From contig NW_021832228.1 in assembly GCF_006345805.1 (NCBI RefSeq), positions 1 through 64,000 of the forward strand: a stretch of 64,000 bases of DNA, read 5' to 3'. Source of the DNA: Octopus sinensis (Eukaryota). This document shows positions 13,126 to 63,639 of the stretch, piece after piece. The notes beneath the pieces were generated by a model. The model was not told where the DNA came from. It saw only the letters and a program-made list of their open reading frames with translations, and ran no database searches. Made by a program: the position numbers and the translations under genes. Numbering within the stretch: position 1 is the first letter of the stretch; each line of letters begins with the position of its first letter.

Positions 13126-13322
13126 TGGAGATTTCCCTCTCGTATCCGCAAAATAATTAAAGAGCCAAAGGGGGTGTTTTACATTGAGGTCACAGCATAA
13201 GATGACCCCGTCTATCCGTGCAGGATTGGAGACAATGGATAACCAATACTATTGTTTAAATAAATTTAAGTACATTATATGTTGTTTATTCGATGTTGTT
13301 TCTTTGTTTTTTTTATTTCAAA

Positions 13323-16071: not shown

Positions 16072-16288
16072 TTTTCAGCAAGATTTGCGTAATTATGCAG
16101 ATCCCTACTCAGTTCTCCACGTGTGTGATATCAATCGAGCTCATTTTTTTCAGGGGATCAGTTTGAAATATTTTAGGATAATATGCGCTTTTTACAGCTC
16201 GTCTAAAACCTTTTTATCTACTCTATTCTGGAGTTTTAACTTTTTTAACTTAAATTGCCCTAGTGATAACAATCGAGCTCATTTTTCT
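16072..16288 (+). repeat. About one diverged monomer of the 168-bp satellite
   Basis: CAGTTCTCCACGTGTGTGATATCAATCGAGCTC...AAAACCTTTTTATCTACTCTATT matches the 42.1-45.2 kb array. Confidence 0.92.
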
Positions 16289-16484
16289 TTGAAATAAAAA
16301 AAACAAAGAAACAACATCGAATAAACAACATATAATGTACTTAAATTTATTTAAACAATAGTATTGGTTATCCATTGTCTCCAATCCTGCACGGATAGAC
16401 GGGGTCATCTTATGCTGTGACCTCAATGTAAAACACCCCCTTTGGCTCTTTAATTATTTTGCGGATACGAGAGGGAAATCTCCA

Positions 16485-17270
16485 TGGTTAGTGTAAGGGT
16501 AGGGTTATGGTTTGGGTTAGCGTTAGGGTTAAGGTTAGGTTAGGGTTAGGGTTATGGCTAGGGTTAGATTTATGGTCATGGTTAAAGTTAAGGTTAGTGT
16601 TAGGGTTATGCTACTCACCCCAATATGGTTTTGACATACTGACCTACTGGCTTATGGGTAGGGTTAGCGTTAGGGTTATGGTAAGGGTTATGGTTCAGGT
16701 AAGTGTAGGGTTATGGTTAGGGTTAGCGATAGGGTTAGGGTTAAGGTTAGGTTATGTATGAAATAGCGTAATATATTACACAATATTGGGAGGTCCCTAG
16801 ATTTTCCCACTATGGCATTCACCAGCTGACTTACTGACCCCAATATGGTTTTGAGCTACTGACCTACTGGATTATGGTTGGGGTTAGCGTTAAGGTTAGG
16901 GTTATGGTTAGGTTTAGGGTTATGGTTAGGGTAAGGGTAGGGTTATGTTTAGGGTTAGGGTTATGGTTCAGGTAAGTGTAGGGTTATGGTTAGGGTTAGC
17001 GATAGGGTTAGGGTTAAGGTTAGGTTATGTATGAAATAGCGTAATATATTACACAATATTGGGAGGTCCCTAGATTTTCCCACTATGGCCTTCACCAGCT
17101 GACTTACTGACCCCAATATGGTTTTGAGCTACTGACCTACTGGATTATGGTTGGGGTTAGCGTTAAGGTTAGGGTTATGGTTAGGTTTAGGGTTATGGTT
17201 AGGGTAAGGGTAGGGTTATGTTTAGGGTTAACGTTAGGGTTAGGGTTAGGGTTAAGGTTAGGTTATGTAT
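16485..17270 (+). repeat. Degenerate (TTAGGG)n telomere-like tandem units (mirror of 12342-13125)
   Basis: GGGTTA/GGTTAG-rich hexamers with the same spacer module inverted. Confidence 0.9.
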
Positions 17271-17734
17271 TTTTAAATTTTTTCACGAATGAATTTTTTA
17301 TATTAAGTCGCTGCCTGGTTAATTTACCCACTAGAACAATATAATCACGTGGTTTTAATAATTAAAATTTCTACTCGAGTTACTTTTTGAGTGATCAGAC
17401 ATTAATTTTCACTTGTGGGAAAATTTATTTGACTATGAAGATTAAAATTGGCTAAATAAAAAGAGAATGGAGTATACAATAAACGAGAATAGATCTTCGT
17501 GTGAAAATAGTCGCTAGTCATTCCATGGTCTCAAAGAGACAGTCTATAAACCTTAAAGAGGCTAAAAAATATTTACTGAAATCACTAAAAATCCCAAGAT
17601 TTTGTTGTACAATACAACCGTAATGTGATGTCAAAATCTTAATTCACATACTTATTATTGATTTATAAATGACAAAATCGTGCTTCATTATGATAATTTT
17701 ACTTAAGTTTTAGAATTTGTTTCAGAAAACTACA

Positions 17735-19375
17735 TACCTTTTATTGCTCGTCTGGTCTCTTTGGCCTACGGTCGACCCAGCCTCCTTATCGGTGGCGACC
17801 ACTCAATCTCTTCCTGCAACGGGGCTAACAAGGCGATCCTCTGGGTCCTCTCCTTTTCGCCCTGGCAATCGATCCCGTTCCCAGAAGTGTATCCTCCGTT
17901 TTTAATGCTTGGTATCTGGACGATGCTACCATCGGAGGTACACTCGAATCCGTTCTCGACGATCTGAGAACTTTAATCCCGGCATTACACGCAATTGGCC
18001 TTGATATCAATCCCCGAAAATCTGAAATCTTTAACATCAGTTATGATGTCCACTGTTTCTCTGTTGCCCATTGTTCTATCGAGTCATTACTTCCTAACAT
18101 CCATGTCACTTCGCCCGGAAATCTCAAGATTCTGGGTTCCCCAATTTTTCACTTCAATGTTGTTTCTACCTTATCAGAAAAAACATCAAACCTTGCGTCA
18201 ATGTCCTGTAATCTTGGTGTCATCGATTCCCATTCGGCCCTGTTCTTATTAAGGAACTGTTTCGCCGTTCCTAAACTACTGTTTACCCTCAGAAGCGCAC
18301 CATGCTTTGCCAATCCCGAGAGTTTTTCCAGATTCGACCATGCCTTTAGGACTTGCCTCGAATCAATATGTAATGCACCATTCGACGATCTTGGCTGGGA
18401 ACAGGCAATACTCCCTATCAGTCATGGCGGCATCGGTGTGCGCTCAGCCACTGACCTTTCTTTGCCAGCATTCCTTCCCTCCACACATGCCACGAGCACC
18501 CTTGTCCAAGAGATTCTCCAACCCTTTTCCGAATCCTCTTTGGACACAGAGTCAGTCGCCGCAAAAAGCCGCTGGCTTGGGTTGTCTCTTGTGCTCCCTC
18601 AGAATCCGCACGCACAGGTCGAATGGGACAGGATCCTCTGCGACCAGAAGTTAAACAACCTCAAGCCCAAGCTTAACCAACATCGCTTGGCTTGCTTACT
18701 GGCTGCCTCACAACCATATTCGGGGGCTTGGTTGACCGCTATCCCAATGGGTTCTATTGGAACCTTATCGGACGATGATTGCCTGAGGATCGGCATATCA
18801 CTGCGCCTAGGTCTGAACGTATGCCGGGAACACCGGTGTCGCTGTGGATCGACCGTTGACCCCTTTGGACTGCACCCGTTATCGTGCCAAAGAAGTCCCA
18901 GACGCTTCCCTCGACATACGGCTCTGAAGGACATAATCAAGCAAACCCTGGAAACTGCCGAATTCCCTTCACAACTGGAACCTGTCGGGCTGGCTCGGGA
19001 GGATGGTAAACGTCCTGATGGTCTAACGACCTTTCCATTTGAAAATGGCAAGTCTCTCATCTAGGACGCCACTCGCACGGATACCTTCTCCGCCGGGAAC
19101 ATCTTGTCGTCGGCTTCAGAGCAGGGCTCCGCAGCCAACCTGGCCGAAACGCTAAAAATCAAGAAATACAGTGCATTATCTCACCGCCACATCTTTGCTC
19201 TGATCGCAGTGGAGACATCGGGAGTCCTCGGCCCCAGAACTAAAAAATTTCTTATTAAACTGGGGGATTTGGCAAGCAGAAGGAGAAATGATCATCGGGA
19301 ACGGACATGGCTTTTCCAACGCATATCAATAGCCATCTTGCGTGCCATTCCATCCTATCCTCTGCTGCTAATTAA
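17735..19375 (+). pseudogene. CRE-clade RT-RLE non-LTR retrotransposon, 5'-truncated
   Basis: RT motifs QGDPLGPLLFALAI and WYLDDATIGG after a frameshift; LLRNCFAVPKLLFTLRSAPCF; zinc knuckle CRCG...HPLSC; RLE DGKRPDG...LI*DAT (TGG>TAG) ...AVETSGVLGP. Confidence 0.9.
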
Positions 19376-19750
19376 ATATACCTAATTATCATACCATGAT
19401 TCACTTTATTAACATATTTATCTTTGAACTTTTATTCAAATAATGTAAATCTGTCCTTGTTTGCCGTCATGACATCGTTAAAAATATAATTATCGTGCGA
19501 ATTTGTCATTTTATTATACATGATGGAAGGTTTTTTACTTATTGCAGTCTCACGGTGTGATAATAACTACTTAAGTGTTAATTGAGCAATCACAATATAC
19601 TGATTTTATGTACATTTTACTGTTCAAATGAATGATTAGAGACATTTTTATAAGTGTTAAAAATACAAATGATTTTAATTATATTAATAGTCATTTTATT
19701 GTTTCTTGCTAAATGACGGAATTACTTAAAATCTAAAACTCTTTATATAG

Positions 19751-20017
19751 GAAATTATTATGGAATTTCATGCAGAATTTGTGGCGACCGTGCATCAGGA
19801 AATCACTACGGAGTCGCAACATGTAATGGTTGCAAGGTACTTTGTAGATTAACGTTTCCTTGCATTTAGTCTTTTTTCCACAGGACAGAATCTTTAAATG
19901 TTGATAAAAAGTATACATGTCCAAAAAATGGAGCGTGTGTAGTCGACAAAATTACAAGGAATAGATGTAAGTATTGTCGATACACAAAATGTCTCCAATC
20001 TGGAATGTCGAGAGATG
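19751..20017 (+). CDS. Nuclear receptor DBD exons (copy 3; intron 19837-19869)
   Basis: As copy 1, with one A>V substitution (NVDKK versus NADKK). Confidence 0.85.
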
Positions 20018-20318
20018 GTTAGTTTTATTTAAAATTTATTATTACAATAATGCGGTAAATTTAAGTAATGCGAATATATATTGATTGATTTTCAAAGTCT
20101 TTGATCTAGTTTTATGATTTTTATATGAAATGAATGTCATTTAGACAATTTTGTATTAATTTATCATGATAGATCGCGATAATACCCGGATATCAACACT
20201 TATTACAATACGTTTTAATTTATTTAGGTATAAAATTCGGGAGAATCTCTAATAAAAATAGAAAAAAAGAAGATATCAAAAAAACAATTTTTTTTGGCGC
20301 ACTTTTGATTTTTTTTTG

Positions 20319-22744
20319 GGTACTGTTGCATTTCATCCTGCACGAAAATATCCTCTAAATCAGGGGTCGGCAGGATTTTTGTCTTCGCGGGCCAAAATTT
20401 TATTTTTGTATGCGATCCGGGCCAAACGGGAAAAAATCCTTATCGGTCACAAAAATAAGGCAACGTTTGCACATTGCGATCTTTCTTTATCAAGTTTTTT
20501 TTTGCAACTTTCTTACGAAATAAAAATTCATCAGTTAAAAATGATTATAAAGAAGTGAATTTATTTTACTCATTAATCTGACTAGTTTCTAAACGTAATA
20601 TATCGTTAAGATGTGAATCGGTAATCCTCGTTCTCAGACAATTTTTTACATTATTCATTTTAGAGAATAATTGTTCACATAAAAATGTGCTTCCAAATAT
20701 ACAAGCCATTTTCATAGCATTGTCGGTTAATTGCGGATATTTTCTGACACATACAAAATTTTTGTAGAAGCTCAAAATATCCATTTCAAAAAAATATTTT
20801 GATTTAAGTGTACTGTCGCATTGAATTTTAAGTAATTCCATTTGATAACACCCTGGTACTGTCTCAGTTTCAACATCAAATGAGATTGAAAAAATGTTGA
20901 AAAGATTTTTATGAGCCTAAAAAATTATATATGCGCATTTTATTCTTAAATCCATAAAACGTGATGAAAATTCTGATCTCAATTCCATAACTATGTTTGC
21001 ATATTCCGGAACATCAGTCGGATTCGTAGAAAGAAAATTCACAAAATGCGTCATGTTTCCTTTTTGTAACTGTAATTCCCACAACTTCAATTTATTTTCA
21101 AAAGCAGTGATTTCGGCATACATTTAAGGTATAAATTTATTACTTCCCTGCAGTTTCAAATTTAAGTCATTTAGATGTGAAGTTATGTCTACAAAAAATG
21201 CCAATTTGAAAATATCAGTATTTCGGAAATATGAAGCATCATAATTCTTTTCTTCAAGAAAAATTATAAAATCTTCCCGTATATGAAAAAACCTTTTGAG
21301 CATTGATCCTCTACTAAGCCATCTGACATTACAAAAATATAAAAGATCCTCATATTCTGCTTCAGTGTCGATTAAAAATTGCCTGAACTGCCGATGATTC
21401 AAGCCGCGGGATAAAATAAAATTTACTGCATTAAAAACAGCATTTATTGTCTCACGTAACCTGACTGATTTGACAACTAACGCCTCTTGATGAACAATAC
21501 AGTGAATCTTAACCAAATTGTGCTCAATTCCAAATTTTTCCATTTCATTTTGGAGTAATGTAATAGTTCCCTTTTTTTTCCCAACCATAGATGGAGCCCC
21601 GTCTGTTGTAATTCTTTACTAAATTTGTCGGCGGGCCAAATTCCCTTAGTATTATAAAATTTGTTTGCGGGCCATTTTTAAATCTTTCTGGGCCTAATTT
21701 GGCCCGCGGGCCGCGATTTGCCGACCCCTGCTCTAAATGAATTAATGAAAATTTTTATGAATATTAGATCAAAAATTTAAAAAATTGAACTATGCCGATT
21801 TTGTAAATTTTATTCTAATTTTTTTTTAAAAAAATTTGAATTTTTAAGCTGCTTAGTGGTGTCAAAACAATGCCGACAAAATTAAATCTGAGCTATTAAC
21901 GACCACCTATCTAAAAAGACACAGTTGTTGGTTAATAAAGATGCTTATCATCATTCCCTCAGTGAAAAAATCTTTATTACAATAAAAAAGGTCAGCTAGT
22001 AGTACGAAGCGTGATATTCGGCGGATAAAATTTGACGATGACATCTATTAGCTCATCGAAGGAGTTGTCTGAATGGATCACTTGCCTTCTCCATAAAAAT
22101 TTTATAAATGTATCAGGAGTATTTAATACCTGCAAAATATGCACCCATGAAGTGACGCGGGGTCCCCCTTTGTCTCTTATTGCGCCATTTTGCGCACCCC
22201 CACATTCTATATTTTCATATATAATTATTATCTGAACCTCTCAACATTCTGTGTATGTGCACCTGTGCTCGGATCTACAAAAAAATACTGTGTCTGTCGA
22301 AACTCCACATGTACATAAAGCGAATACATGACTGTAAGGTCACTTTCGTGCCTTCGAGCCACGTACCTAAAAATAAAGTACTCTCTTATACCGTTTCTAA
22401 TAGAACTATATGTTCGACACCCACTTTTATAGCACACCCATGTTGTATTCTCCTGCTGTTGGAGAAGGGTCATAAAATGTCTGTTTTGACATTTTTTTTC
22501 TTTGAAAAAAATTCCAACCTCTTGAAGGAAGGCAACTGACTTCATTTCAAGTACGGGGAAGTTCATAGTCCTTCAGTTTTGCAAATTTTCGCATGACAAC
22601 TGTATCATTTTTTTAAAAAAAATTAGAATAAAATTTACAAAATCGGCATAGTTCAATTTTTTAAATTTTCGATTTAATATTCATAAAAATTTGCATTAAT
22701 TCATTTAGAAACTATTTTCGTGCAGGATAAAATGCAACAGTACC
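20319..22744 (-). mobile_element. Merlin-like element with nested hAT (20361-21730) (copy 3)
   Basis: Inverted copy of 6871-9296; hAT TSD reads CTCTAAAT on this strand. Confidence 0.9.
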
Positions 22745-22986
22745 TTTTTTGTATTTAGTAATGTTTGTTTTTTAATATAAAATCTTTTTTATTTTCCTTT
22801 TAACAGAAGTTAATTTATGGAATTAATTTGGACACCTTCCATCGGCGTGGAAGCATACGATTGTTCGAATGATTCCAAAATCTGGTAAATCGACATTCCT
22901 GGCACAGAACTACCGGCCAATTAGCCTCATTTGTGCTTTCTCTAAGACAATGGAAAAGATTGTCTTTAACAGACTCTCTGGTCATA

Positions 22987-23720
22987 TAGTTAGTTAGTTA
23001 GTTAGTTATGTTACCCTGGCTTCACTAACACGTAGGAAGCCGGCTGCAATCAGGTAGCGAGACGCGAAGATCGGGCGCTCCCAGAGATCCCGAATCCCAA
23101 TAGGCGGAGACAAATGAGGCGGTCCAGGACAGGGGAAAAGGTCTTCAGGGGTGAAGGAACGGTATGTTTCGAAAATCAGTGGATGATGTCCCGAGCGAAT
23201 CTGAGCAAGCTGGACACGGAGATATCTGCCGAGTGATTGCTCTGAGGAGTGGACCGGCGGGGGGGGGGAGAGTTGAGAAGTTTGTTGTTTTTGAGCATCC
23301 TGATAGCACGAGTGGAGATGTGGTCATGGATTAGTTTATTCGCAGTTTTCCCGTTGTTGGTTGAGAGTATTTTTGAAAGACATCTACATTGATTGGCCAG
23401 AGTAGAAATGATGTGTCTTTTGTTTTCTGGAATAGAGATTTTGTGACTTGGATGAGAAGAATCTTGTATTTCCTGTAGGAATTGGAGTCCTTTCATCGTC
23501 AGATGGTCATCGACCGGAAGGATACAGGACTCCCAATGGAGATGATCGATGGGAGTGGATGCAAGGCAGCCAGTTATTGTGCGTAGCTCTGAGTTTTGGA
23601 TTCTTTGGAGTTTTTGGAGGTTTGAATGAGACAAGTTCCATGACCATGCTGGACTAGCATAGTTCATAGATGTTCTGACAAATTGTTTGTAAACCAAAGT
23701 GAGGCATTCTTTGGCTTGGA
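22987..23720 (-). mobile_element. 5'-truncated Ingi/Vingi-like LINE 3' portion
   Basis: [17 protein letters not shown]...IQNSELRTITGCLASTPIDHLHWESCILP parallels VYKQYIRPVLSYASPSW...IQNKAMRIISGCLKSTPIDHLHCETNLLP at ~50.2 kb. (TAAC)n tail. Confidence 0.85.
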
Positions 23721-27706: not shown

Positions 27707-27909
27707 TTTATTATTATTATTATTTAAAGACCAAACACGGGCAAAACCAGTTAATTATAGTTATTCCCGTGATCGCCGATCCAAACGAGGGAGATCCTTC
27801 TGAAAGGTTCAATCCTTCCTGCAAGATCGGCCTGAGACGACGATGTCCCAGGGTCTGAGAAGCTAAGAGTCCTTTTTTTGGTAGGTGCTCTAAGTGCCTC
27901 CTGAGCGTT
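27707..27909 (-). mobile_element. 3' half of the SINE family seen at 53477-53917
   Basis: Reverse complement of about 53725-53917, with (TAA)n tail. Confidence 0.85.
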
Positions 27910-32536: not shown

Positions 32537-32689
32537 TTTTATCGGTTATAATTTATGAAACTGTCTATGTCTCATATAATATTTAAGATTAATTGCTCGA
32601 TGACTTAATTGTGCCCACGGCCGCACATTCATAGACTCACGGCCGCACTTGCGCACCCCTGATCTAGAGTATTTCTAGAATGAAACTCT

Positions 32690-32910
32690 AAAAAACTGGC
32701 ATATGAAGCAATAAACTTACATCAACGAGTTACCAAAATGGCTTGCACTGGAATGGGGATTGACCGTCATTTATTCGCTCTTTTCATTGTTTCGAGATTT
32801 TTGGTGGGAAAATCGGAATTTTTGGAATGCGTTCTTCAAGAGACATGGGGAATGTCTACTAGTCAAGTAAAACAAATGTGTTTTGTCACAATCAGACTCC
32901 AGTTTCTCAG
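32690..32910 (+). pseudogene. Carnitine O-palmitoyltransferase (CPT1-like) C-terminal fragment truncated by a LINE
   Basis: MACTGMGIDRHLFALFIVSRFLVGKSEFLECVLQETWGMSTSQ^TPVSQ resembles the CPT1 GIDRHLF...LSTSQ segment. 29-nt intron at 32867-32895; LINE tail follows immediately. Confidence 0.75.
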
Positions 32911-33037
32911 AGAATAGAATAGAATAGAATAGTGTTTATTGAGCAAAAAGAAAAAGAAAAACAAGGAAGAAATCATCGGCGGGGAGATAAAAACAAGGCA
33001 CCGAAGTGTCTCTTTCCACGCGTATCCCCAATACTAG

Positions 33038-38464: not shown

Positions 38465-39756
38465 ATGCTTTACAATCGATGCCATAAAGAAGGACAAGAT
38501 GATGATTCAGGTTGTATTTAATCACTATTTTTTATTTAGAATGGAACTTAAATACCTATTCTATACTAGTTGATCGGGTTAGATCAAAATTAGCAAAGAC
38601 TTCTTCTTCCTATAAAAAGTCCCTTAATCGAACAAACTGGGACGAAATTGCTTTTGATGGGTACTCTGGTGCCGAATGTAGACAAAAAGTCGAACTCCTA
38701 ATTTCTAGAGTTAATAACTGCCTATTATTTTTTAGACAAAAAAATTCCGGACCTTAGAAAGTCTTTTGACAGAAGTCAGTTCAAAATTGAAGAATGTAGT
38801 CAACAGAATTGTAAATTATCCTATATAGCATAAATAGAGTGAGGGGCCTGTTTTAAATGCTTACAATTTATTTGTCAAAAATAACTATAGCCGATTTCGA
38901 GCTGAGCATCCTGATATTCATATGATTGAGTTGACTAAACTAATGTCTCATCATTACAAAGGACTAGCTTCAGAACAAAAAGTATTTGTTAATCTAATTC
39001 AATAATAGCAAAAATATATCGATCAAGAATATCAGAATAATGCAAACTACCAATGCAACGACGAGTTTAGTAATTATTATTTAAATTAGACCAATTTCAC
39101 CCCCGAAACTTCCCAAACGTGCTTGGGAGCTGTTTATTTCAAAAAAAGTCAAGAAGAATCTGAAGAAAAACCCAAATGTCTGTGAAATATTTGATTATGA
39201 TAGATTTCGAAGGATGTTTTAGAAATAAGATTTGCAGAAAAATTTAAGAACCTAACCATTAAACAACAGTTTCACTATGTTCTGAAATATGAAAAACTAA
39301 GGGGACGATACGAAGTAATAAATTGATTTTTTACATTATAGAGAATATGTGAGGAATATGTGGCCTCAAATCCAGGCGCAAAACTTGAGAAAATATTAAC
39401 CCGTGATCTCAAAAGAGAGCGTGAAATCATTTTTGAATATTTAAATGTCCCTAATAAACCTTCAGTGTAATTAATTCTAAAGACATAATAAAATATTATA
39501 GTTCCTCTTTCGATTTATTTTTCGCGGAAAATGCATCTGAAGGTATGCAGAATGCCAAGATGCTATGGGATCAGTTGTCAGCACAAGAGAAACAAGAAAA
39601 GCAGGCACTGGTTTCAACGGTTGCTCTAATTTGTTGATTTTTTAGATGAACATAAATTATTCGAAAGCTTTTGAAGCATGTATCTCGAAACTCGATGACT
39701 ACCATTCATCACTGGTTATGAAATACTCATTTTTTGATCAAAAGCCTAAGGTTTAG
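38465..39756 (+). CDS. UBTF: Upstream binding factor (UBF)-like multi-HMG-box protein, ~350 aa, 10 exons
   Basis: Nine GT-AG introns (38511-39, 38710-35, 38811-37, 38982-39008, 39065-89, 39178-203, 39315-41, 39467-501, 39620-45) give one stop-free ORF. WNLNTYSIL...NWDEIAFDGYSGAECRQKV...KKFRTL matches the UBF N-terminal domain (DWEKVAFKDFSGDMCK...RKFRTL); three HMG-like boxes follow. Confidence 0.88.
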
Positions 39757-41030: not shown

Positions 41031-42086
41031 ACCAACCTGTGAAACCATTTTGTGAAACCTGATTTTGCACGCGAACTTTTCTTTTCTGTCAATTTTACTG
41101 CTCTTAAAAAAAAAGATCTCGGACACGTGTCAAGGCAGGCCAAAATCACAAGTTTCTCAAGTACGGTCACCTTCCAAACTAGTTGTTTACTCCAATCGCT
41201 TTGAATTCTTTTGGCATCTTCGGTCCCAAAACGGTTCGTTACAACAGTTCAGCTTTTCAAATTTGTTAATTGACAGATTTTTAATATGTTTAGGGAATTT
41301 GTTAATGTATTCTAGAGATTTTATCAATAAACTGCATAATTCCAGGCCTCTTCTAGAAGGGTGTTCATGGATAGGCCATTAGCATACATTGTAGTAGCCT
41401 ATAAAGAATCTAAGGTCTAGGAACGTCTGACTCCAGTTTTGCGTGCAAAAACGTTCATAAAACATCAAAATTGATATAACAATATTATTAATTTATTTAG
41501 TTTCTCATTTTCATTGTAAGTCTGACATCTTAAGTTACATCGTACATGGTTCCTTAGTTTGAGATAGTAAAAAGGTTTAGAGGAGGTTGAACAAGTTAAT
41601 ATAGTAGACGATCAAGGGAGGCAGTTGTCCTGAAAAAATCAGGTCGATTGGTTGCACACAAGTGGAGATCTCGCGTTTATTTTTGGTGAAAATAAAAACG
41701 CATTTTTAGATTTAAATAAGAACGCTATTATTTTAGAAGTGATTTATTATGTTTCTTGCCACTAAGGTAAATTTTGTTGACGTATTTGATCAAATTGAGT
41801 AAGATACTTGCTGTTTGATATATTAAAATATGAGACTTAAATAGATCCGACGTTGACCCTGAATGCCATCACACGTGGTGCACCCACTAGAAACAATTAA
41901 CACCCAATAAATTTAATAGATTTAAAACATAATAATTTATAACTAAATTAACTAAAATTTGCTCAGAGTTCGGATAGCACCTCGGTTTTCTCCTCAGACC
42001 TTCTTATAGAAATCAGAAACAGAATATATAACTCTCTCTAGGAAGATCTGATGAGATTTCTGAATACAGAAATGAATTTAGAACGT
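41030..42086 (+). mobile_element. ~1.05-kb non-autonomous composite element carrying a CRE-RLE fragment
   Basis: Same start (ACCAACCTGTGAAACCATTTT) and end (TTTAGAACGTCA) as ~56600-57847. The 5' part encodes frameshifted GHVSRQA...KYGHL...FGIFGPKTVR. Terminal hairpin ATTTCTG-AATA-CAGAAAT. Confidence 0.75.
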
Positions 42087-45000
42087 CAGTTCTCCACGTG
42101 TGTGATATCAATCAAGCTCATTTTTTCAGGGGTTAGTTTTAAATATTTTTCGATAATATGCGCTTTTTACAGCTCGTCTAAAACCTTTTTATCTACTCTA
42201 TTCTTGCGTTTTAAAATTTTTAACAAGATTTGCGTAATTATAAAGATCCATACTCAGTTCTCCACGTGTGTGATATCAATCGAGCTCGTTTTTTTCAGGG
42301 GATCAGTTTTAAATATTTCTCGATAATATGCGCTTTTTATAGCTCGTCGAGAACCTTTTTATCTACTCTATTCTTGCGTTTTAAAATTTTCGACATGATT
42401 TGCGTAATTATAAAGATCCATACTCAGTTCTCCACGTGTGTGATATCAATCGAGCTCGTTTTTTCAGGGGATCAGTTTTAAATATTTTTCGATAATATGC
42501 GCTTTTTATAGCTCGTCGAAAACCTTTTTATCTACTCTATTCTTGCGTTTTAAAATTTTCGACATGATTTGCGTAATTATAAAGATCCATACTCAGTTCT
42601 CCATGTGTGTGATATCAATCGAGCTCGTTTTTTCAGGGGATCAGTTTTAAATATTTTTCGATAATATGCGCTTTTTAAAGCTCGTCTAAAACCTTTTTAT
42701 CTACTCTATTCTTGCGTTTTAAAATTTTCGACATGATTTGCGTAATTATAAAGATCCATACTCAGTTCTCCACGTGTGTGATATCAATCGAGCTCGTTTT
42801 TTTCAGGGGATCAGTTTTAAATATTTCTCGATAATATGCGCTTTTTATAGCTCGTCGAGAACCTTTTTATCTACTCTATTCTTGCGTTTTAAAATTTTCG
42901 ACATGATTTGCGTAATTATAAAAATCCATACTCAGTTCTCCACGTGTGTGATATCAATCAAGCTCATTTTTTCAGGGGTTAGTTTTAAATATTTTTCGAT
43001 AATATGCGCTTTTTACAGCTCGTCTAAAACCTTTTTATCTACTCTATTCTTGCGTTTTAAAATTTTTAACAAGATTTGCGTAATTATAAAGATTTATACC
43101 CAGTTCTCCACGTGTGTGATATCAATCGAGCTCATTTATTCAGGCGTCAGTTTTAAATATTTTTCGATAATATGCGCTTTTTACAGCTCGTCTAAAACCT
43201 TTTTATCTACTCTATTCTTGCGTTTTAAAATTTTTAACAAGATTTGCGTAATTATAAAGATTCATACCCAGTTCTCCACGTGTGTGATATCAATCGAGCT
43301 CATTTATTCAGGCGTCAGTTTTAAATATTTTTCGATAATAGGCGCTTTTTATAGCTCGTCGAAAACCTTTTTATCTACTCTATTCTTGCGTTTTAAAATT
43401 TTCGACATGATTTGCGTAATTATAAAGATCCATACTCAGTTCTTCACGTGTGTGATATCAATCAAGCTCATTTTTTCAGGGGTTAGTTTTAAATATTTTT
43501 CGATAATATGCGCTTTTTACAGCTCGTCTAAAACCTTTTTATCTACTCTATTCTTGCGTTTTAAAATTTTTAACAAGATTTGCGTAATTATAAAGATTCA
43601 TACCCAGTTCTCCACGTGTGTGATATCAATCGAGCTCATTTATTCAGGCGTCAGTTTTAAATATTTTTCGATAATATGCGCTTTTTATAGCTCGTCGAAA
43701 ACCTTTTTATCTACTCTATTCTTGCGTTTTAAAATTTTTAACAAGATTTGCGTAATTATAAAGATTCATACCCAGTTCTCCACGTGTGTGATATCAATCG
43801 AGCTCATTTATTCAGGCGTCAGTTTTAAATATTTTTCGATAATATGCGCTTTTTATAGCTCGTCAAAAACCTTTTTATCTACTCTATTCTTGCGTTTTAA
43901 AATTTTCGACATGATTTGCGTAATTATAAAGATCCATACTCAGTTCTCCACGTGTGTGATATCAATCAAGCTCATTTTTTCAGGGGTTAGTTTTAAATAT
44001 TTTTCGATAATATGCGCTTTTTACAGCTCGTCTAAAACCTTTTTATCTACTCTATTCTTGCGTTTTAAAATTTTTAACAAGATTTGCGTAATTATAAAGA
44101 TTCATACCCAGTTCTCCACGTGTGTGATATCAATCGAGCTCATTTATTCAGGCGTCAGTTTTAAATATTTTTCGATATATGCGCTTTTTATAGCTCGTCG
44201 AAAACCTTTTTATCTACTATATTCTTGCGTTTTAAAATTTTCGACATGATTTGCGTAATTATAAAGATCCATACTCAGTCTCCACGTGTGTGATATCAAT
44301 CAAGCTCATTTTTTCAGGGGTTAGTTTTAAATATTTTTCGATATTGCGCTTTTTACAGCTCGTCTAAAACCTTTTTATCTACTCTATTCTTGCGTTTTAA
44401 AATTTTTGACAAGATTTGCGTAATTATAAAGATTCATACCCAGTTCTCCACGTGTGTGATATCAATCGAGCTCATTATTCAGGCGTCAGTTTTAAATATT
44501 TTTCGATAATATGCGCTTTTTACAGCTCGTCTAAAACCTTTTTATCTACTCTATTCTTGCGTTTTAAAATTTTTAACAAGATTTGCGATTATAAAGATTC
44601 ATACCCAGTTCTCACGTGTGTGATATCAATCGAGGCTCATTTATTCAGGCGTCAGTTTTAAATATTTTTCGATAATATGCGCTTTTTATAGCTCGTCGAA
44701 AACCTTTTTATCTACTCTATTCTTGCGTTTTAAAATTTTCGACATGATTTGCGTAATTATAAAGATCCATACTCAGTCTCCACGTGTGTGATATCAATCA
44801 AGCTCATTTTTTCAGGGGTTAGTTTTAAATATTTTTCGATAATATGCGCTTTTTACAGCTCGTCTAAAACCTTTTTATCTACTCTATTCTTGCGTTTTAA
44901 AATTTTTAACAAGATTTGCGTAATTATAAAGATTCATACCCAGTTCTCCACGTGTGTGATATCAATCGAGCTCATTTATTCAGGCGTCAGTTTTAAATAT

Positions 45001-45243
45001 TTTTCGATAATATGCGCTTTTTATAGCTCGTCGAAAACCTTTTTATCTACTCTATTCTTGCGTTTTAAAATTTTCGACATGATTTGCGTAATTATAAAGA
45101 TCCATACTCAGTTCTCCACGTGTGTGATATCAATCAAGCTCATTTTTTCAGGGGTTAGTTTTAAATATTTTTCGATAATATGCGCTTTTTATAGCTCGTC
45201 TAAAACCTTTTTATCTACTCTATTCTTGCGTTTTAAAATTTTC
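42087..45243 (+). repeat. 168-bp tandem satellite (19 monomers)
   Basis: Period 168 (e.g. 43101, 43269, 43437, 43605, 43773, 43941); three monomer variants. Confidence 0.98.
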
Positions 45244-47780: not shown

Positions 47781-49948
47781 CAGACGTCACCAAACTACGG
47801 CCCGCGGGCCGGATCCGGCCCGCGACAACATTTTATCCGGCCCGCGCACTATTTCGAGATATTCAATTAATACCTTAATAATTAACTTAAATAAAAACTT
47901 TAATTAAAAAATTAAACTATTTTGCAAGATTTAATTCGAAAAAAACTTATCAGCATTAACGTTAAATTTTTCTTTGTTGCTATGTCTAATATGAAAAGAA
48001 AGGTTGACCGCGAATGCCGTGTATTCAATAAATTATGGGAATTGAAGTATTTTTTTGCGAAAGATGAATTAAAGCAGAAAGCTTATTGTTTAATATGCCA
48101 CGAACATCTCTCTGTTATGAAGGAGTATAACATTCGACGTAATTATGAAACGAATCATGCTCCGATATATTCCAAGTACACTGGAAAGCTACGTGAGGAT
48201 AAAGTTGAATCACTGAAACGCACTTTACAAATTCAACAAGGCCTTATAAAAAAAAATTTTGAAAATAATAAAAATGTAACAAGAGCTGGATACGAGATAA
48301 CGAAAATTATTTCACAACACGGGAAACCCTTCAGTGATGGGATGTATATCAAAAATTGCATTATTGAAGCAGTTAATTGTTTGTGCCCACTAAATTCTTC
48401 CTTATTTGATGGAATAAGTTTGTCGGCGAGTTCTGTATCACGGAGAACTGAAGAGCTTGGAAAAAATATATATTTACAAATTTGTGAAAAGACAAGTAAT
48501 ATGTTGTGGTATTCTCTTGCATTGGATGAGTCAGTTGACATTTCGGGAACATCGCAACTTCTTATTTTTATTCGTGGAGTTGATGAGAATTTTCCATAAC
48601 TGAAGAACTGGCATCTGTTTGTTCTATTCATGGAACAACCACTGGAAAAGATATTTTTGATGAATTGGAACAAACTATAAGTGACTATAACCTTGAATGG
48701 GAGAAACTGAGTTGTGTTACGATTGACGGGGCAAAGAATATGGCTGGTTCTAAAAAGGGTCTAGTTGGGCAAATAACTAATAAATTGGAGGAATTACATA
48801 TTTCAAACACTTTGTTCATTCATTGCATCCTTCATCAGCACGCACTATGTGCGAAGGCTCTTAATATTTCATGTGTGTTGAATCCAGTTATTCGCATAAT
48901 AAACTTTGTTCGAGGGAGCTCACTTAATCACCGTCAGTTTAAAGTTTTACTTGACGATTTTGGATCTGAATATTTTGACTTACCATATTACACTGCAGTT
49001 AGATGGCTTAGCTGTGGTAATGTATTAAATAGATTTTATAAACTCCGAAGTGAGATTGATATTTTTCTAACCAGTAAAAATAACTATTATCCCGAATTAT
49101 CAGATCTTGCTTGGCTATCAAAATTATCATTTTGGTTGATGTTACAACTCACATGAATGAGCTAAATCTGAAATTACAAGGAAAGGAAAACTTAATTTGT
49201 GATTTCTACAGGATAATTAAAGCATTTCGACAAAAATTGATGTTATTCGAGTCACAACTTGGAGTACGTCAGTTTTCACACTTTTCTTTTTAAAAGTTTT
49301 TGTGAGGCAAACTGTAATGAGATCGACATTACTTTCCAAATTGGAATTATCAAAGAATTAAAACATCATTTTTTACATAAGTTTTCTGAACTTGACAAAA
49401 TTGAAAGCGATATAATTTTGTTCGAAAATCCATTTTCTTGTAATGTTGAAAATGTTCAACATGAATTACAATTAGAAGTTATTGACTTACAATCAAATGA
49501 AGAGCTCAAAGATTGTCACAGACGGACCAAACTCGCTGAGTTCTACGAATATCTCAAGCATGATGAGTTTCCGAGACTAAAGAATTTTGCGATAAAGATG
49601 ATTTCTATATTTGGCACAACTTACCAATGTGAGCAAACGTTTTCGAGGATGAAATATGTTAAGTCTGCCCATCGTGCAAGATTGACTGACGGACTCTTAA
49701 AATCAATTCTCATGATAGGATGCAGCAATTTAAAACCAAATATTGATGAACTTGTCAAAAAAAGATCACAGTTCCATAGCTCTCATTAAAATTTTTGTTT
49801 ACTTTATTTTTGTTTAAATTAGTTTTTATTGTAAAAAACACACTTATGAATTTCTAGTAAAATTATAATCCTATGCACGTGCTCCGGCCCGCGTTCATTG
49901 TGTTGGGGTCAATCCGGCCCGCGAGTGCAAAAAGTTTGGTGACCCCTG
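47781..49948 (+). mobile_element. hAT (Charlie/SPIN, GTF2IRD2-like) transposon inserted in the LINE; frameshifted transposase 47982-49789
   Basis: TIR CAGACGTCACCAAACT / AGTTTGGTGACCCCTG; 8-bp TSD GTTTAGGC. CLIC...H zinc finger, LDES, TIDGA, HCILHQHAL, VRWLS, TTYQCEQTFSRM. Confidence 0.95.
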
Positions 49949-52678
49949 GTTTAGGCCATTGATTTTGGCAAGTACCCGGGAGTATAGTTTGGCAGGCGTG
50001 TTCTTTAGTGCACGGCCGTTGTCATTTAGCGTGTTTAGGGCAGTGCAAGGGTGGTAGAGTTTTCGCGAAGCGAATAGGAATTGTGCTCCTCTTATGTTTA
50101 GATGTTCCTCAATCGGGAGGAGGTTGGTTTCACAGTGCAGATGGTCGATGGGTGTTGATTTCAGGCACCCGGATATGATGCGCATGGCTTTGTTTTGAAT
50201 TGATTGGAGAGCCACAGAGGAGCTCATAGAAAGACAGGGAGCCCAACTCGGACTCGCGTAGCTTAGGACAGGGCGAATGTATTGTTTATACACACGTTTG
50301 AGAAGTGGTTTCTGCGCACCAGTGATGTGACCACTTATTGGTTTCAGGATATTTGTACGCCTGTTAGCCTTGTCAGAGATCTTCGAGGCATGTTTGTTGA
50401 AGGACATCGTTGGGTCGAAGGTTAGTCCGAGAACAGTTGGGTGTTTTGATAGTGGGAGAACAGAGCCAAAGAGAGATAGGTTGGGATGTATGTTTGATTG
50501 TCTTCTGTCGGAAGATAATAGGGTGACCGAGAACTTGGAGGACGAGGCCTCGAGCCTGTTTTCTCTGAGCCAATTCTCAACGGAGTGGAGTTGTTGCTGA
50601 AGGTTGAAGGAGGCAGCTTTATAGTCTTCGTGTTTTGAGGCAATAATAATGTCGTCAGCGTAAGATAGTGTCAAGTTGTTAGGGTCGTTTGCCGGGAAGT
50701 CATGCAAGTAAAGATTGAACAGGGATGGAGACAGCACGGAACCCTGCGGTACCCCGTTTGGAAGATAGCGTTGTTTGGAACAATGGTCCATGAGGGAGAC
50801 GTAGCCCATGCGGCCTGATAAGAAGTTAGCAAGTCAGGATTTGTAGTTTGAGTCTAGGCCGGTCGTGAGAATTTTCTTGGTGAGACCGCAACGGGGGACG
50901 CTGTCAAAAGCTTTAGATATGTCGATGGAAGCTAGAACTGTTCGTTTAGGGGGCCTCTTCACATTGAAGCCGTCCAGGACGAATTGGGAAAGCGTTGTTA
51001 AGTGAGTGGTTGTTGAGTGCAGTGGTTTGAAGCCATGTTGGGTGTGGGATGTTGGTAAGTGCTTCGAGACTCGTGAAAGGATTAGTCTTTCGAGGATTTT
51101 AGATAGCGTGCACAAAAGAGAGATTGGGCGGTAGGAGCTTGGAATGCCAGCCGGTTTGTTCGGTTTGATTAACGGGATGATACGTGATTTTTTCCAAAGA
51201 GATGGAATTTCGTTTTTTACAACGGAATTGTTGAAAATAGACACTATAGCGTTGATTGCGTTAGGGCCAAGTCTTTTAAGGTGGTGGATAGAAATGTTGT
51301 CAGGCCCCGTGGCGGGGGAATTCTTCGAGTTTTTTATACACTGCGAAACTTCGTCTGCAGTGAAAGGCGGTAAGGATTCCGTGCGAGGTAAGCTCCTCCG
51401 AGATTTGGCGACCTTCCGATCGTTTTTGTTTGAGGTTTTGTGGCTTAAGGAGGCGTAGTAGTTCATGAGCGAGTTTGCCTCCTGAACCGGATTCAGTGGG
51501 ATGTTTGAGTTAGAAGTGGCAGATTCGTGGGACTTGGGCTTTTCATAAATCAAATCATTCATGTCCTTCAGGGTCTTCCAGATTTTGGAGCTGTTAGATC
51601 TGTAGTCGATTGAGGTGATAAATTCGGTCCACTTAGAATCTGCGTGCAGGTTAATGGCAGCGGTGATTTGTTTGTTTAGGTTAGCCAATTCAATGGAGGA
51701 CTCGGCAGAGTGCCTTGATATCTTTTTCAGTTTGTTGCGAGTCTTTATGAGGGATTTCACTTCATGGCTGTAGTTAGGGCGGAACTTTTTAATTTTTCCT
51801 TGGGGGATGAAATTTTTAGAGGTGGAAGTGATGAGAGCATTAAGGTGATTGACTGCTGCATCAGTCGAGCGAAAGCTGTTGATGTTGAAATCATTCAGAG
51901 AGTTTTCTAGGGCAAGGCGGTATTCGTCCCAGGAAGCTCTTTTGTAGTTAGTGTAACAGCGGCGTTGTAGGTCAATGTTAGATTTTAGCGCATTCTCGAT
52001 TATGATTGGGTTATGGTCACTGGTTAGGTCGTAAACCACCTTCCAGGAAGTAGCAGAGGCCAGAATGGGAGTACACAGTGAGATGTCGGGAGAAGAGATT
52101 GCGTCGCCATTTCTTGACGGGGTTTTGGTATGGGATGAGGAGTTGTTGAGGATGACTAAACCGTCAAGTTGATCAAGTAGAAGAGTTCCTCTTGAGTTGA
52201 GGCATTGATTTTTAAGCCAAATCGGGCTCTTTGCATTCATATCACCACAGATAAAGACATTACTGAGGGACTGGAGGTTTTGTATTGAAGGGGTCCAACC
52301 GTGAGGACAGGATGAACACGGAGGGATGTACATGTTGATCAGCCTTCTGGTTGAGCGCCCTGTAGAGACCGTTATAGCCGTCAGCTCAATTACAGGGTCG
52401 TTATCGATTAGTGTGTAAGCTTGTGATGTACAGTTAGAGAAAGGGATTGATTTTCTGATAAGAGTTAAAAGGCCCCCGCCATTTACGGAGTTCGGTCTGT
52501 CTCGCCGGATGTATGAGTAACCCGGGAAATCGGGCAGACGGTTTTTGGGCGAGAGCTTCGTTTCCTGCACCAAAGCAATGTCCACGTCGTACTTCTCCAT
52601 GAAGGAACAGAGTTCAGTGGTCTTGTGGGCGATCCCATTAATGTTTACTTGCAGGATACGAAGTAGGTTCTTCCTGGC

Positions 52679-52717
52679 GGGTCCAGGGTTTTGTTCGATG
52701 TCTCCGGAGAGGAGAAG
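52679..52717 (-). other. 2A-like StopGo ribosome-skipping peptide LLLSGDIEQNPG/P
   Basis: Matches the D(V/I)ExNPGP consensus, in frame immediately before the APE domain (residues 44-56 of the ORF). Confidence 0.92.
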
Positions 52718-52819
52718 GGCGAGTTGGGAGTGTAAAAGAGAGGTCCTTGGGAGCAACGGCTTCGCGCCTGCTCTGCTGCCACCGACGTCACGGAAGGTAT
52801 CCGATCCGACAGGGGGGGT

Positions 52820-52894
52820 TGTGGGTCTTTTGGTAGTTAATTCCATGAGAAACTATCATTTGCCACCACGAGAAGGTGACCCACATCGACAAAC
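52820..52894 (-). ncRNA. HDV-like self-cleaving ribozyme (predicted)
   Basis: GUUUGUC-GA-UGUGGGUC-ACC-UUCUCGU-GGU-GGCAAAU-GA-UAGUU-ucucAUGgaauu-AACUA-CCAAAA-GACCCACA. P1 7 bp with G1.U37 wobble, P2 8 bp perfect, P3 3 bp, L3 fits UYCHCGY, P1.1 G-C/A-U, P4, J4/2 C. G1 abuts the TSD. Confidence 0.88.
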
Positions 52895-53119
52895 CTATGG
52901 GGAGTAGACTTAATAAATGCCGAATTTAGCCCTTGGATTATTTTCAGTTTAAGGAATTTCCTTTGTATCTTAGAAGTTAGTTTCCGAGACTCTTTTAAGA
53001 TACCTTTCACTTTCTCAATTTGTACATTTAGATTCTCAAGACAAGCTTTAAATTTATAAATTTCCACGTTCAAATGTGTTACGTTTTCTTCCTTTTGGCT
53101 GATCGTCTTTATCGGCCTT

Positions 53120-54340
53120 CTATGGAATCATCAGTTTCTTGACATCTCCAATATTATCAACAAGTATCATATCGGTAGTTCCGCTCACACTAAAAGGATT
53201 ATCAGAAGTGACTACGATAAAATCTCCGTAGTGAAGAATTCTATATTGCAGAGCAAAGCAAATTGCTATAGCCATTCTTTGTTTTACATTTTCAACAGGA
53301 GTATGAACAGGTACCCAACAAAAAGTCAATTGGTGATAGGTGCTTTCTTCTGGAGTAATGGAAATAATTGGCATCTTACGACGAAAGCGAACCATCACAC
53401 ATGCTGTGAACTTAATTGCTGTTAAAGCAATGACTGCTTTTCCATGTTCCGTATAAACTGTCTTAATAGCCGCAATTATTATTATTATTATTCAGCCCCC
53501 TTGGCTGAAGACTAAGCTATGGATAATGGATTTGTATGGTCGTGAGTTCGATTCCGAAGGAGGACAGTTTTCATCCTGGGGCTAATTCTCGTTATCGTTC
53601 CCCTGCCCGTGAGGCAACGAGTACTTCTGGCACGACACAGTTGGAAATGGGGATCTCTTACCTTCCGGGCTTAGCGTGGCGTTACGGGGTCCACCATGTC
53701 AGTTGGAAATTCCTTCGGATATGGCAACGCTCAGGAGGCACTTAATGCCTACCGAAAAAGGACTCTTAGCTTCTCAGACCCTGGGACATCGTCGTCTCAG
53801 GCCGATCTTGCGGGATGGATTGAACCTTTCAGAAGGATCTCCCTCGTTTGGATCGGCGATCACGGGAATAACTATAATTAACTGGCTTACCCGTATTGGT
53901 CTTTAAATAATAATAATAATAGCCGCAATAGAAACCTAAGAAGAAATATCTTTAAAAACGCGATGCGCTACGTCTTTGTAAAAGAATTTTTCATAGTTAA
54001 AATCATTTTCCGTAGCAATCACTGTATTTTTCATTAGAAGAACTGTTTCAACAGGATATTTACCTACCGTCATTTCACCAAACATCATTTTTTGAAGTTT
54101 TGGAACCTGAATGGGTAATTTTCCCCTAGGTCTTCTCAACAACCATGATCTGTTCTGATGCTTGTAGGATGCTATCAAAGTTTTTTAGTCCTGAAGCATT
54201 TTTAATTTTGGCAATAACAAAAACGTGACTGGAGTTTTGATCAGCTAAAAGTTTTCAATTTCCAAAATATGATCAGCACTGCGAAAAAAGAAAGCAGGTA
54301 AAAAGTCTATCTCCTGCTCATAACAAAAATGATGCCTTAA
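53120..54340 (-). pseudogene. pyk: Pyruvate kinase pseudogene, intronless, bacterial-like; split by a SINE
   Basis: RSADHILEI-KLLADQNSSHVFVIAKIKNASGLKNFDSILQASEQIMV...VPKLQKMM / GKYPVETV...TENDFNY...VSIAA[SINE]IKT...KMPIISITP...GDFIVVTS...SGTTDMILVDNIGDV. Frameshifts and a deletion of about 45 aa. Confidence 0.85.
53477..53917 (+). mobile_element. SINE-like element (tRNA-like head, (TAA)n tail)
   Basis: 12-bp TSD AATAGCCGCAAT (53465-76, 53918-29); B-box GTTCGATTC at 53546-54; weak A-box TGGCTGAAG; second partial copy at 27.7 kb. Confidence 0.8.
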
Positions 54341-54925
54341 TTTTTTCGATCACATGCGAGGATCAGGAGGATTCAAGCTAATTGTCTCTTCAGACGCTTC
54401 AACATGATTACTGAGAGTCTTAATACGATGGACCATGTCTGAATTCTTTTAAATTTCGGAGAACTTGTGATAATAATCTTTACTTACGAAGATGTGTCTC
54501 AGACTAAGAAGTGTCTCGAGGGGAGCTAACAAGAACTTCAGGAAAAAGCCACCCTGTAATTATGGAGACCGCATTCTTCATGATGTTCACGAATCTAAAT
54601 GAAAAAAGCAGTCGAAAAAAACAGCAAATCCGAAAAAAAATCGTACTTTAAATATTCATTGATAATCCTAACGTTTCTAGTCACATAGATCTGAAAGTCT
54701 TTGGTAAAGGCTTGGATAAACCATATTGACACGTGCTGAAATTGGGACTAGTGGTTCTCCACGAAAACCCATCAATCCTTTCAATACTTGATAGAAAAAT
54801 TGGTTCATCGGAGACTCTTTCAGGAAAATACTGCCTCGAGTTTAAAATTCTATTTTATTTATTATTATTTATTATTAATCAAATATAGTTTAATATATAA
54901 TCATTTAACTAATATTTTGAAGCAC

Positions 54926-55864
54926 ATGTTTTCCCATCAAGGTGCGTTTTCCAAAGTTACTGTCAAGAAAGACCCACGATGGAGTTTCCTCGTGTGTGTA
55001 AAGACTCGAACAAATAAGAATTATAAGTAAAAATGTAATAATATATTTTTATAGTTCCCTTGGTAGAGAAATGCGGATTTTGGCCCACTGCTGTCATCCC
55101 TACGTCGTGAGGATCCTCAGTACGGATGTTAGTGAGGGAATAATCACAGAGTACTATGAGAACGGTATTTCCTGATAATTGACAGTTAGATCTCTACAAA
55201 TATTTCCAATCCGATGAAGTGAAGATCGCATGTCCTGCCAGTCTAGAGCGAAGAGCCTCCTTGGTCATCGGAGACTTGCTATCGGCTCTCATCCGCATTG
55301 TTTATTTATCTATTTAATTTTAGCATAAAATGTATTTTCATGGGGACCTCAATTCTCGAAATATTTGTCTTGCCTTCGATGGTTCACCAAGGATCATAGA
55401 TTTTGCATCGGCCGGTGCCATCCACAGCGGCATCTCCAAAGTGCCTACGGACACAACCTTTCATTACATGGCTCCAGAACGGAGGAAGAGGATTGGGACA
55501 TACACCCCTAAGGTATTCCCCACCAACATTTCAGTTGGATATTTATTCTTTGGGGATTATATTCTCCCAATATTTGTTCAGAGGATGGAACCCTCTTACT
55601 CAGGTTTGTACTCATAGTTGGATTTGCAGTACTCCGTGGAACAACTCATTATTCAAGTGAACGAAATAGAGATCTGTCCTCCCAATGTTTTTTCGGATGA
55701 GGCCAAAGATTTGTTAAAAATGTAATTCCGTTTCTATATTTGGTAGGATGTGTGACAACGATCCACTTAAAAGGTGGAGTGCCGTCCAGTTAATCGAGCA
55801 TCCTTTTATTACAAAGTATTATTCATTTCATTAACATTTCAGGTATAGAAAGTCTGTTTATTGA
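54926..55864 (+). CDS. Divergent Ser/Thr protein kinase, 8 exons (start codon tentative)
   Basis: Seven 22-28-nt GT-AG introns give QGAFSKV, VCVK, REMRIL...HPYVV, HGDLNSRN, IIDFA, YMAPE, LDIYSLG, EAKDLL...DPLKRWSAVQLIEHPF, then TGA. Confidence 0.85.
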
Positions 55865-61960: not shown

Positions 61961-62869
61961 GATTTAAAATTTTAACATGATTTAAAATTGAAATAAATTA
62001 AGTTTTCCATTCAATTCCATTTAAAACCAAATACCAGCTTCTCTATTTGTCAATTTATAAATTTTTTATTGACAAAATCACCTAAAAATTTTTTTTTTTA
62101 TTTTTTTTTTTTTTTTTATTTTTTTTTATTTTTTTAAACAAGAAAGAAATTAAAGATAGCCCTAACCCTAACCCTGAGAAATTAAAGTTGAATTTTATGG
62201 TCAATTTATTTCCAAGTCCACAAATGTAATTCGTCCGGCTCGGTAGCTTATTCAGCTCGTGACATATTACTAGTCATTCGTGCATTTTTAGACGCATCCT
62301 ATATAATCTATATGTATAATTTAAAATCATAATCCTCAGTTCTTATATTTTTAAGGCATCTGCATGATTTGTACATTCTAATAACCAAAGGTCTTAACTT
62401 TTCACCTTTAATACAACAACATAAAAGGATTGTTGGTTTTGTTTACAAATTTTTCTACCGAAGAAATTTTCATCTTAAATGATTTATTCGGTTCTTTTTA
62501 ATGAAAAGGCAGGTTTTGTCACAATTAAAAATGTCTTCCATGTTGAACTTATCATAAAGTCATCATACTCTTCGTAAAATTTGACCATTCGCCTCACGGG
62601 TTGGAAGGGTGACAAGACTTGACCCAAGCTGGAAACTTGCTTCTTTCGGAATAGAACCCACGACATTCATATTCCAACATCCATAGCATAATCTTCTCAC
62701 TTGATCACTTACCAATGAAAAATCTTCAGTATGTAAAACCCTTCCGGAAACAAATGACGTGAGGTGAGCGACGGTTGGAGGCTAACAAACGGGTACTGGG
62801 CAAACCAGATATTCTCCACCTCTCTTTGAATCCGGAAAGCTGTATTGAAGATTTGGAGGCTAATGTTGA

Positions 62870-63459: not shown

Positions 63460-63639
63460 CCATAATGAAAAACTGAAAATTAAATTAATTATTTTAGAAG
63501 AGTATAAAAAAGAAACCTCAAAAGAGGCACAAAAATATAAGAACCAGATAATCCCTATACACGGAAATCTTTAGTAAAAGGCAAAGATTTATACGCTTTG
63601 CATAGGAATCAGATTACCTTTAGGAAAGAAAAATTTTAT

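Follow-up and report, generated by a model that had tools for sequence, protein, structure and literature searches.

The 64-kb window, by which we mean the whole stretch of DNA analyzed here, contains a bacterial gene fragment that is very probably a non-functional nuclear integrant of Simkaniaceae-type chlamydial pyruvate kinase (pyk) DNA in the germ-line chromosome of an animal. The pyruvate kinase (PK) reading lies on the minus strand, running from position 54338 down to 53141, and represents an internal piece of a pyk gene; about 750 bases of PK sequence are retained and are interrupted by a 441-bp host insert. Translation of positions 53000-54700 placed all of the PK-like peptides quoted in the initial annotation on this strand, namely LLADQNSSHVFVIAKIKNASGLKNFDSILQAS, VPKLQKMM, GKYPVETV, PIISITPEESTYHQLTF and SGTTDMILVDNIGDV. 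Nucleotide identity to a bacterial pyk gene is approximately 70% over 54338-53142.

The domain content of the fragment was analyzed using a repaired translation, in which the insert was removed and the frames were joined. This translation scored 46.5 bits (cut-off 30, E value 3.6e-12) against the PF00224 barrel at positions 183-277 of the 328-position model, and 63.5 bits (cut-off 28, E value 2.3e-17) against PF02887 (PK_C) over nearly its full length. Solved pyruvate kinases in the PDB were matched down to an E value of 1e-24, the best being bacterial (Geobacillus). We also built a 595-position profile from 13 full-length chlamydial PKs and used hmmsearch to query both the region and, in six frames, the entire 64 kb. 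The matches were confined to profile positions 178-262 and 309-475, and the fragment is therefore internal to the gene. Its upstream half (53918..54338, minus strand), delimited by hmmsearch and by nucleotide alignment to the chlamydial loci L001 and L004, covers profile positions ~178-364, comprising the end of the barrel and the start of the C-domain, and holds a frameshifted stretch, a 144-nt deletion and a TAG codon. The downstream half (53141..53476, minus strand) covers profile positions 360-475 in the PK_C alpha/beta domain and is 70% identical over 110 amino acids to protein P0001. Homology has a firm start at ~54338 and ends abruptly at 53141/53142, after ...DNIGDV; the fragment lacks ~177 codons at the N-terminus, 46-48 in the active site and ~120 at the C-terminus. 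A possible degraded N-terminal extension (54339..54430, minus strand) consists of patchy nucleotide matches that are not significant; beyond 54338 only a tblastn drift alignment was obtained, with no profile match. Profile positions 476-595, which form the C-terminal extension, had no match anywhere in the 64-kb window. What is present is a piece of a PK gene and not the gene itself.

Judged from its sequence, the fragment is chlamydial and of Simkaniaceae type, and not metazoan. A protein search produced 14 matches, and all of the named ones are from Simkania, Simkaniaceae or Chlamydiae, the best being P0001 at 69-70% identity. A scan of 185,579 species genomes, with one genome for each bacterial or archaeal species, confirmed 452 relatives. 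Chlamydiota fill the first 27 places, with Ca. Neptunochlamydia sp. SimkCsp1 in the lead; two of the 27 are MAGs that bear the label Verrucomicrobia and group with the chlamydiae in the tree. Below these 27 the scores fall to Firmicutes with identities of 36% or less. Across the 247 columns retained, L001 was the sequence most similar to the fragment (70.5% identity), ahead of the protein P0003 from Tara Oceans (60.7%), Ca. Neptunochlamydia (L004, 57.6%) and a Simkania negevensis MAG (L006/P0002, 53-56%). Other chlamydiae showed 40-48% identity and non-chlamydial bacteria at most 36.5%, with E. coli PykF at 32.1% and human PKM2, whose sequence was verified against PDB 3u2z, at 29.2%. A Neighbor Joining distance tree of the 247 columns, with 200 bootstraps and one metazoan and one E. 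coli outgroup, placed the fragment within an all-chlamydial clade (99% bootstrap). Inside this clade it grouped with L001, Neptunochlamydia and Tara P0003 (100%) and was the sister of L001 (66%). The affinity to chlamydial PK that the initial annotation had proposed is thus borne out by the 27 top-ranking genomes, by the tree and by the 29% identity to PKM2. The same annotation had named two results that would speak for a host gene, and the data point the other way on both: the fragment nests in the chlamydial clade rather than within metazoan PK, and its 29% identity to PKM2 compares with 70% to a chlamydial contig, which is not the pattern of a processed host copy.

The closest relative, L001, is a 7.8-kb metagenomic contig from ENA analysis ERZ25068685 that bears P0001 and has uvrA divergently upstream of pyk. 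Since this divergent uvrA-pyk arrangement is common to at least 10 chlamydial MAG loci (UvrA identity 58-75%), L001 is a genuine piece of a chlamydial genome. It is a noisy long-read contig, with frameshifts and a "1x" name, and nucleotide differences measured against it are slightly inflated. No remnant of uvrA was found within the 64 kb of the window. The C-terminal extension of the chlamydial homologues (…VLVRG…ILQNHP(D/E)D…RAD…TLDP.KG) is also absent from the fragment; this reflects its truncation and is no evidence against a chlamydial origin.

Lesions were read from a nucleotide alignment to the intact Ca. Neptunochlamydia gene (L004) and to L001, and this alignment confirmed that the PK reading carries frameshifts and a deletion, as had been proposed. 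An out-of-frame stretch of ~130 nt (54111..54254, minus strand) changes frame from f1 to f0 and back to f1, with 1-nt deletions near 54254, 54138 and 54123 and a 3-nt deletion near 54111. The junction of the 144-nt (48-codon) deletion lies at 54074..54083 (minus strand), where the alignments lack profile positions 263-308; the deletion takes out ...IRKC...TATQMLESM...PTRAE..DVANA...AVMLS, part of the active-site region, and no intact open reading frame with the active-site segment (…TATQMLESM…PTRAE…MLSGE…) is present. A further 6-nt deletion (53297..53315, minus strand) removes two codons of the conserved ...WG(V/A)VP... in the nucleotide alignment, and an in-frame nonsense TAG (53936..53938, minus strand) replaces a TCT (Ser) codon of the relatives within ...DISSSV.... 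The fragment has no plausible enzymatic function and does nothing as a pyruvate kinase, so that host metabolism is unaffected by it. All deletions of at least 3 nt are multiples of three (3, 6 and 144), and the three 1-nt deletions total three. A pattern this much in frame is expected about once in 27 under neutrality, which is mildly unexpected for pure neutrality and leaves a small probability that the reading frame was kept open for some time. The substitution pattern, described below, argues against a temporarily maintained frame.

Compared with the intact gene of Neptunochlamydia, both the window (at ~54254) and L001 (at ~5395) are one base short in the same A-run. This common deletion was considered as a sign of shared ancestry and rejected; it is probably due to independent homopolymer slippage or to a read error in the 1x contig.

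To separate changes on the fragment's own branch from those on the branch to L001, Neptunochlamydia was used as the outgroup. There were 48 amino-acid changes specific to the window and four specific to L001 (binomial p=1.3e-10), which suggests that the donor was very close to the L001 lineage and that nearly all of the protein divergence arose after transfer. Window-specific nucleotide changes were spread uniformly over codon positions 1, 2 and 3 (32/26/35; p=0.50), while those specific to L001 were concentrated at the third (8/7/55; p=1e-14 against uniform), and the two distributions differed (p=1.3e-6). The GC content of the fragment has moved towards the AT-rich host background: it is 35.2%, with a GC3 of 26%, compared to 42-46% and 36-44%, respectively, in the relatives. 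Codon positions, amino-acid changes and GC3 all show that purifying selection was lost after transfer. The window branch has a Jukes-Cantor-corrected length of 0.13-0.16 substitutions per site of neutral decay, which only a host mutation rate could turn into a date; of the "ancient insertion" that had been suggested, the insertion stands and its great age is not established.

The two halves of the fragment are separated by a non-autonomous, SINE-like retroposon of 441 bp (53477..53917, plus strand), which is antisense to the PK reading. It is bracketed by an exact 12-bp repeat, AATAGCCGCAAT, with the left copy at 53465..53476, where it encodes IAAI of PK, and the right copy at 53918..53929 (2 matches versus 0.03 expected). 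Removal of the insert together with one copy of the repeat restores the PK reading (…ISS*VSIAAIKTVYTEHGKAV…). By eye, a box-B-like sequence, GAGTTCGATTCC, is present near the 5' end of the insert, and the 3' end carries an (AAT)5 tail. The 3' 197 bp recur at 27713-27909 as a 93% identical, 5'-truncated copy with the same (AAT)n tail, and a weaker third copy, of the head and core, is found at 62591-62696. The insert is thus short and non-coding, with dispersed copies, a 12-13 bp target site duplication (TSD) and a LINE-type 3' tail, and it behaves as a LINE-mobilized, SINE-like host repeat. A tRNA or Pol III head was searched for in the insert, and neither ARAGORN nor Rfam (E value up to 1) gave a match. 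Where the initial annotation had described a host SINE with a TSD inside the coding sequence, the retroposon and its TSD are borne out and a tRNA origin is not confirmed. At the 5' edge of the insert (53477-53492) there is a (TTA)5 run that is the inverted complement of the (AAT)5 tail (53903-53917); twin priming and insertion into a pre-existing tail are both possibilities for its origin.

Host elements lie within 300-600 bp on both sides of the fragment, making the bacterial sequence contiguous with host sequence as well as host to a mobile element. On one side, a LINE with an APE and RT open reading frame in two pieces (49895..52846, minus strand; interruption at 50810-50833) lies ~300 bp away in the same orientation as the fragment. 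A search with an 865-aa LINE ORF of the window gave matches at 21-33% identity only, and exact look-ups of two window ORFs had no match. The LINE ORF at 50834-52846 (minus strand) carries, ~50 residues from its N-terminus and before the endonuclease domain, what we take to be a 2A-like "ribosome-skipping" motif (…LLLSGDIEQNPGP). Between the fragment and ORF2 there is also a 78-aa ORF (52837-53073, minus strand), coiled-coil-like by eye, whose stop overlaps the ATG region of ORF2. It may be a short LINE ORF1, in which case the 5' end of the LINE would lie within ~70 bp of the PK fragment.

On the other side, ~560 bp from the fragment, begins a host protein-kinase gene (54902..55834, plus strand), which becomes a single 260-aa ORF only once six GT..AG introns of 28, 25, 24, 22, 26 and 25 nt, or approximately one per 130 bp, are removed. 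The spliced ORF contains the motifs VCVK, HGDLNSRN, DFA and APE. It had no relative with more than 25% identity among 5.8 billion proteins, suggesting an extremely divergent lineage. In the nucleotide alignment, the PK stretch has no insertions besides the retroposon, and none of 20-30 nt, and therefore contains no intron-like feature. The contrast drawn earlier between a PK stretch free of micro-introns and an intron-dense neighbor accordingly holds.

We weighed four other explanations for these data. One is an assembly chimera or symbiont contamination, with bacterial reads mis-joined to host sequence, and chlamydial contigs do occur in host-derived assemblies, L001 itself being such a low-coverage contig. 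A living bacterium would not have a pyk that is truncated, frameshifted and missing 144 nt in the active site, nor would it have a host retroposon with its TSD inside the gene, substitutions that are blind to codon position or a GC3 of 26%. Nor does any other bacterial sequence adjoin the fragment: tblastn (443 ORFs, 28 chlamydial loci) and the six-frame PK profile search found no bacterial remnant in the 64 kb outside 53.1-54.5 kb. Contamination is very improbable and already essentially refuted. The view that this is integrated DNA, which had been based on the SINE within the coding sequence, is strengthened by the neutral decay, the GC shift and the host elements on both sides, and physical linkage to host DNA would follow from the sequence logic of this one assembly. 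Least probable of the four is that the host's pyruvate kinase gene was retro-copied to give a processed pseudogene. The lack of introns in an intron-dense genome would fit such a copy; an identity of 29% to human PKM2 versus 70% to a chlamydial contig, ~70% nucleotide identity to bacterial DNA, and nesting within Chlamydiota at 99% support do not, and neither a poly(A) tail nor a TSD was found around the fragment. Among the sequences available, which did not include the host genome, no intron-bearing host PK closer to the fragment than L001 turned up.

The position of the fragment beside a LINE raises the idea that bacterial RNA was captured by the reverse transcriptase of that element through template switching and inserted as a chimera. 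The fragment lies directly upstream of the LINE 5' end, ~295 bp from ORF2 and ~67 bp from the possible short ORF, and the shared orientation gives the geometry of LINE chimeras. Against this, the 2.9 kb of LINE coding sequence has one interruption versus ~14 stop codons expected at the divergence of the PK fragment. The LINE is therefore much younger, and this gap in age rules out co-insertion by template switching; we rejected it on these grounds despite the suggestive head-to-tail geometry. In addition, no convincing TSD was found around either the whole PK fragment or the fragment plus the LINE, the sole 13-nt repeat (D16) lying inside a hAT ORF. LINE capture can be regarded as very unlikely. 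A once-functional, horizontally acquired PK gene that was later pseudogenized in the host is unlikely too, if less remote than these. The in-frame deletions of 3, 6 and 144 nt and the frame-restoring 1-nt deletions could hint at selection, but the uniform substitutions on the window branch leave no visible phase of purifying selection and the active-site region is deleted. Moreover, ~177 N-terminal and ~120 C-terminal codons are absent with no remnant elsewhere in the window, and no intron has been gained in a setting where the neighboring host gene has about one per 130 bp. An integrant of chlamydial pyk DNA that decayed without function is the reading that we prefer.

The integrant would have originated in a Simkaniaceae-type chlamydia closely related to the L001 organism, as a piece of pyk measuring at least 0.9 kb that entered a germ-line chromosome of the host. 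The donor presumably resided inside the host or its germ-line cells, and the most likely route would be the release of DNA from an intracellular bacterium followed by end-joining into a chromosomal break. Chlamydiae are obligate intracellular bacteria. The earlier label "endosymbiont-derived" is deduced from this obligate lifestyle and describes a presumed endosymbiosis. Either only an interior part of the gene was integrated or its ends were lost soon afterwards, and the sequence would never have been under protein-level selection in the host. Long neutral decay would then have brought a drift to the AT-rich host composition, the loss of ~156 nt by deletions and the gain of a stop codon. The events can be put in a probable order, with pyk integration followed by neutral decay, then by insertion of the SINE-like element, whose copies differ by ~7%, and then by insertion of the LINE at 49895-52846.

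The window as a whole is repeat-rich and of metazoan type, with several APE/RT LINEs, hAT transposase ORFs, satellites and a U5 snRNA. Introns as short as those of the kinase gene were described, in a survey of 51 animal genomes, only in myxobolid myxozoans and in Dicyema japonicum (PMC13644364). Their length of 22-28 nt in the window makes a dicyemid or a myxobolid myxozoan the probable host. D. japonicum has a GC content of 36.7% and 49% repeats, with LINEs (PMC6736024), and the GC content of the window (~37-38%) and its LINE load fit this species; they fit less well with Henneguya salminicola, which has a GC content of 29%, or with the LINE-poor Myxobolus honghuensis. This is a lean towards a dicyemid host, not a finding. 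We found nothing in the literature that connects chlamydiae with dicyemids or myxozoans.

Several other features of the window were observed. Positions 6171-23445 form a near-perfect inverted duplication, with arms that are 99-100% complementary and a center near 14.8 kb, and include duplicated hAT and LINE ORFs; this could be a real palindrome or a fold-back artefact of long-read assembly. Degenerate telomere-like CCCTAA/TTAGGG blocks with a period of ~271-273 lie symmetrically within it, at 12350-12954 and 16656-17262. Near them are a (TAGATCAG)52 array (13333-13750) and 48-nt tandem arrays (4703-6171 and 13750-16072). A 168-nt satellite at 42086-45243 (18.8 copies, 94% matches) reads through as a spurious 503-aa ORF, and the U5 spliceosomal snRNA gene lies at 63513-63617 on the minus strand (66 bits versus a gathering score of 40). 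By eye, we also noted a carnitine/choline-acyltransferase-like stretch (…GIDRHLFAL…) at 32684-32914 on the plus strand, adjoining a LINE, and two HMG-box-like exon candidates at 38838-39002 and 39458-39634, also on the plus strand; these are possible host genes or fragments of them.

Although non-functional, the fragment is of value as a molecular fossil that records an association between a chlamydia and its host. It marks a past intimate infection and is firm evidence of former access by a Simkaniaceae-type bacterium to the germ line of this animal. It also serves as a neutral clock, to which the nested, younger SINE and the LINE add a relative chronology, and it flags a donor lineage, L001 and Neptunochlamydia-like, that may be sought in the living host. 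For those working with symbiont-rich assemblies it is a clean example of how integration and contamination can be separated. More tentatively, and on balance with some doubt on our part, this may be the first trace on record of a Simkaniaceae infection with access to the germ line of a parasitic animal with ultra-short introns (dicyemid or myxobolid), with a close living relative of the donor, the L001 organism, still circulating. If true, many more chlamydial pieces would be scattered through the host genome, and that genome would hold a record of the chlamydia-parasite (hyper)symbiosis that can be dated.

When compared with known PKs, the fragment falls in the same clade (100% bootstrap) as those of Simkaniaceae and environmental Chlamydiota (P0001/L001, L004 and L006/P0002), with 53-70% amino-acid identity. 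It differs from the chlamydial PKs P0001-P0007 in lacking their C-terminal, PEP-utilizer-like extension of ~120 residues (marked as PF00391 in some), and from chlamydial pyk genes in having neither the uvrA neighbor nor an intact frame. Metazoan PK, represented by human PKM2 (PDB 3u2z), shares the enzyme family and fold, but as the root of the tree it lies outside the bacterial grouping that holds the fragment, at 29% identity. Wolbachia and a few other symbionts of the germ line provide well-documented cases of bacterial DNA transfer to animal nuclei; for chlamydiae, such cases are, to our knowledge, hardly documented. The Wolbachia "nuwt" fragments, with NUMTs as an analogue, are likewise integrated, non-functional, neutrally decaying, truncated and later hit by host transposons. 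The present case differs in that the donor is a Simkaniaceae-type chlamydia rather than an alphaproteobacterium, a single fragment of ~0.9 kb is found in 64 kb, and the host apparently belongs to a parasite lineage with ultra-short introns. Fossils of bacterial DNA in animal nuclei are of a known kind; unusual here are the phylum of the donor and, probably, the lineage of the host.
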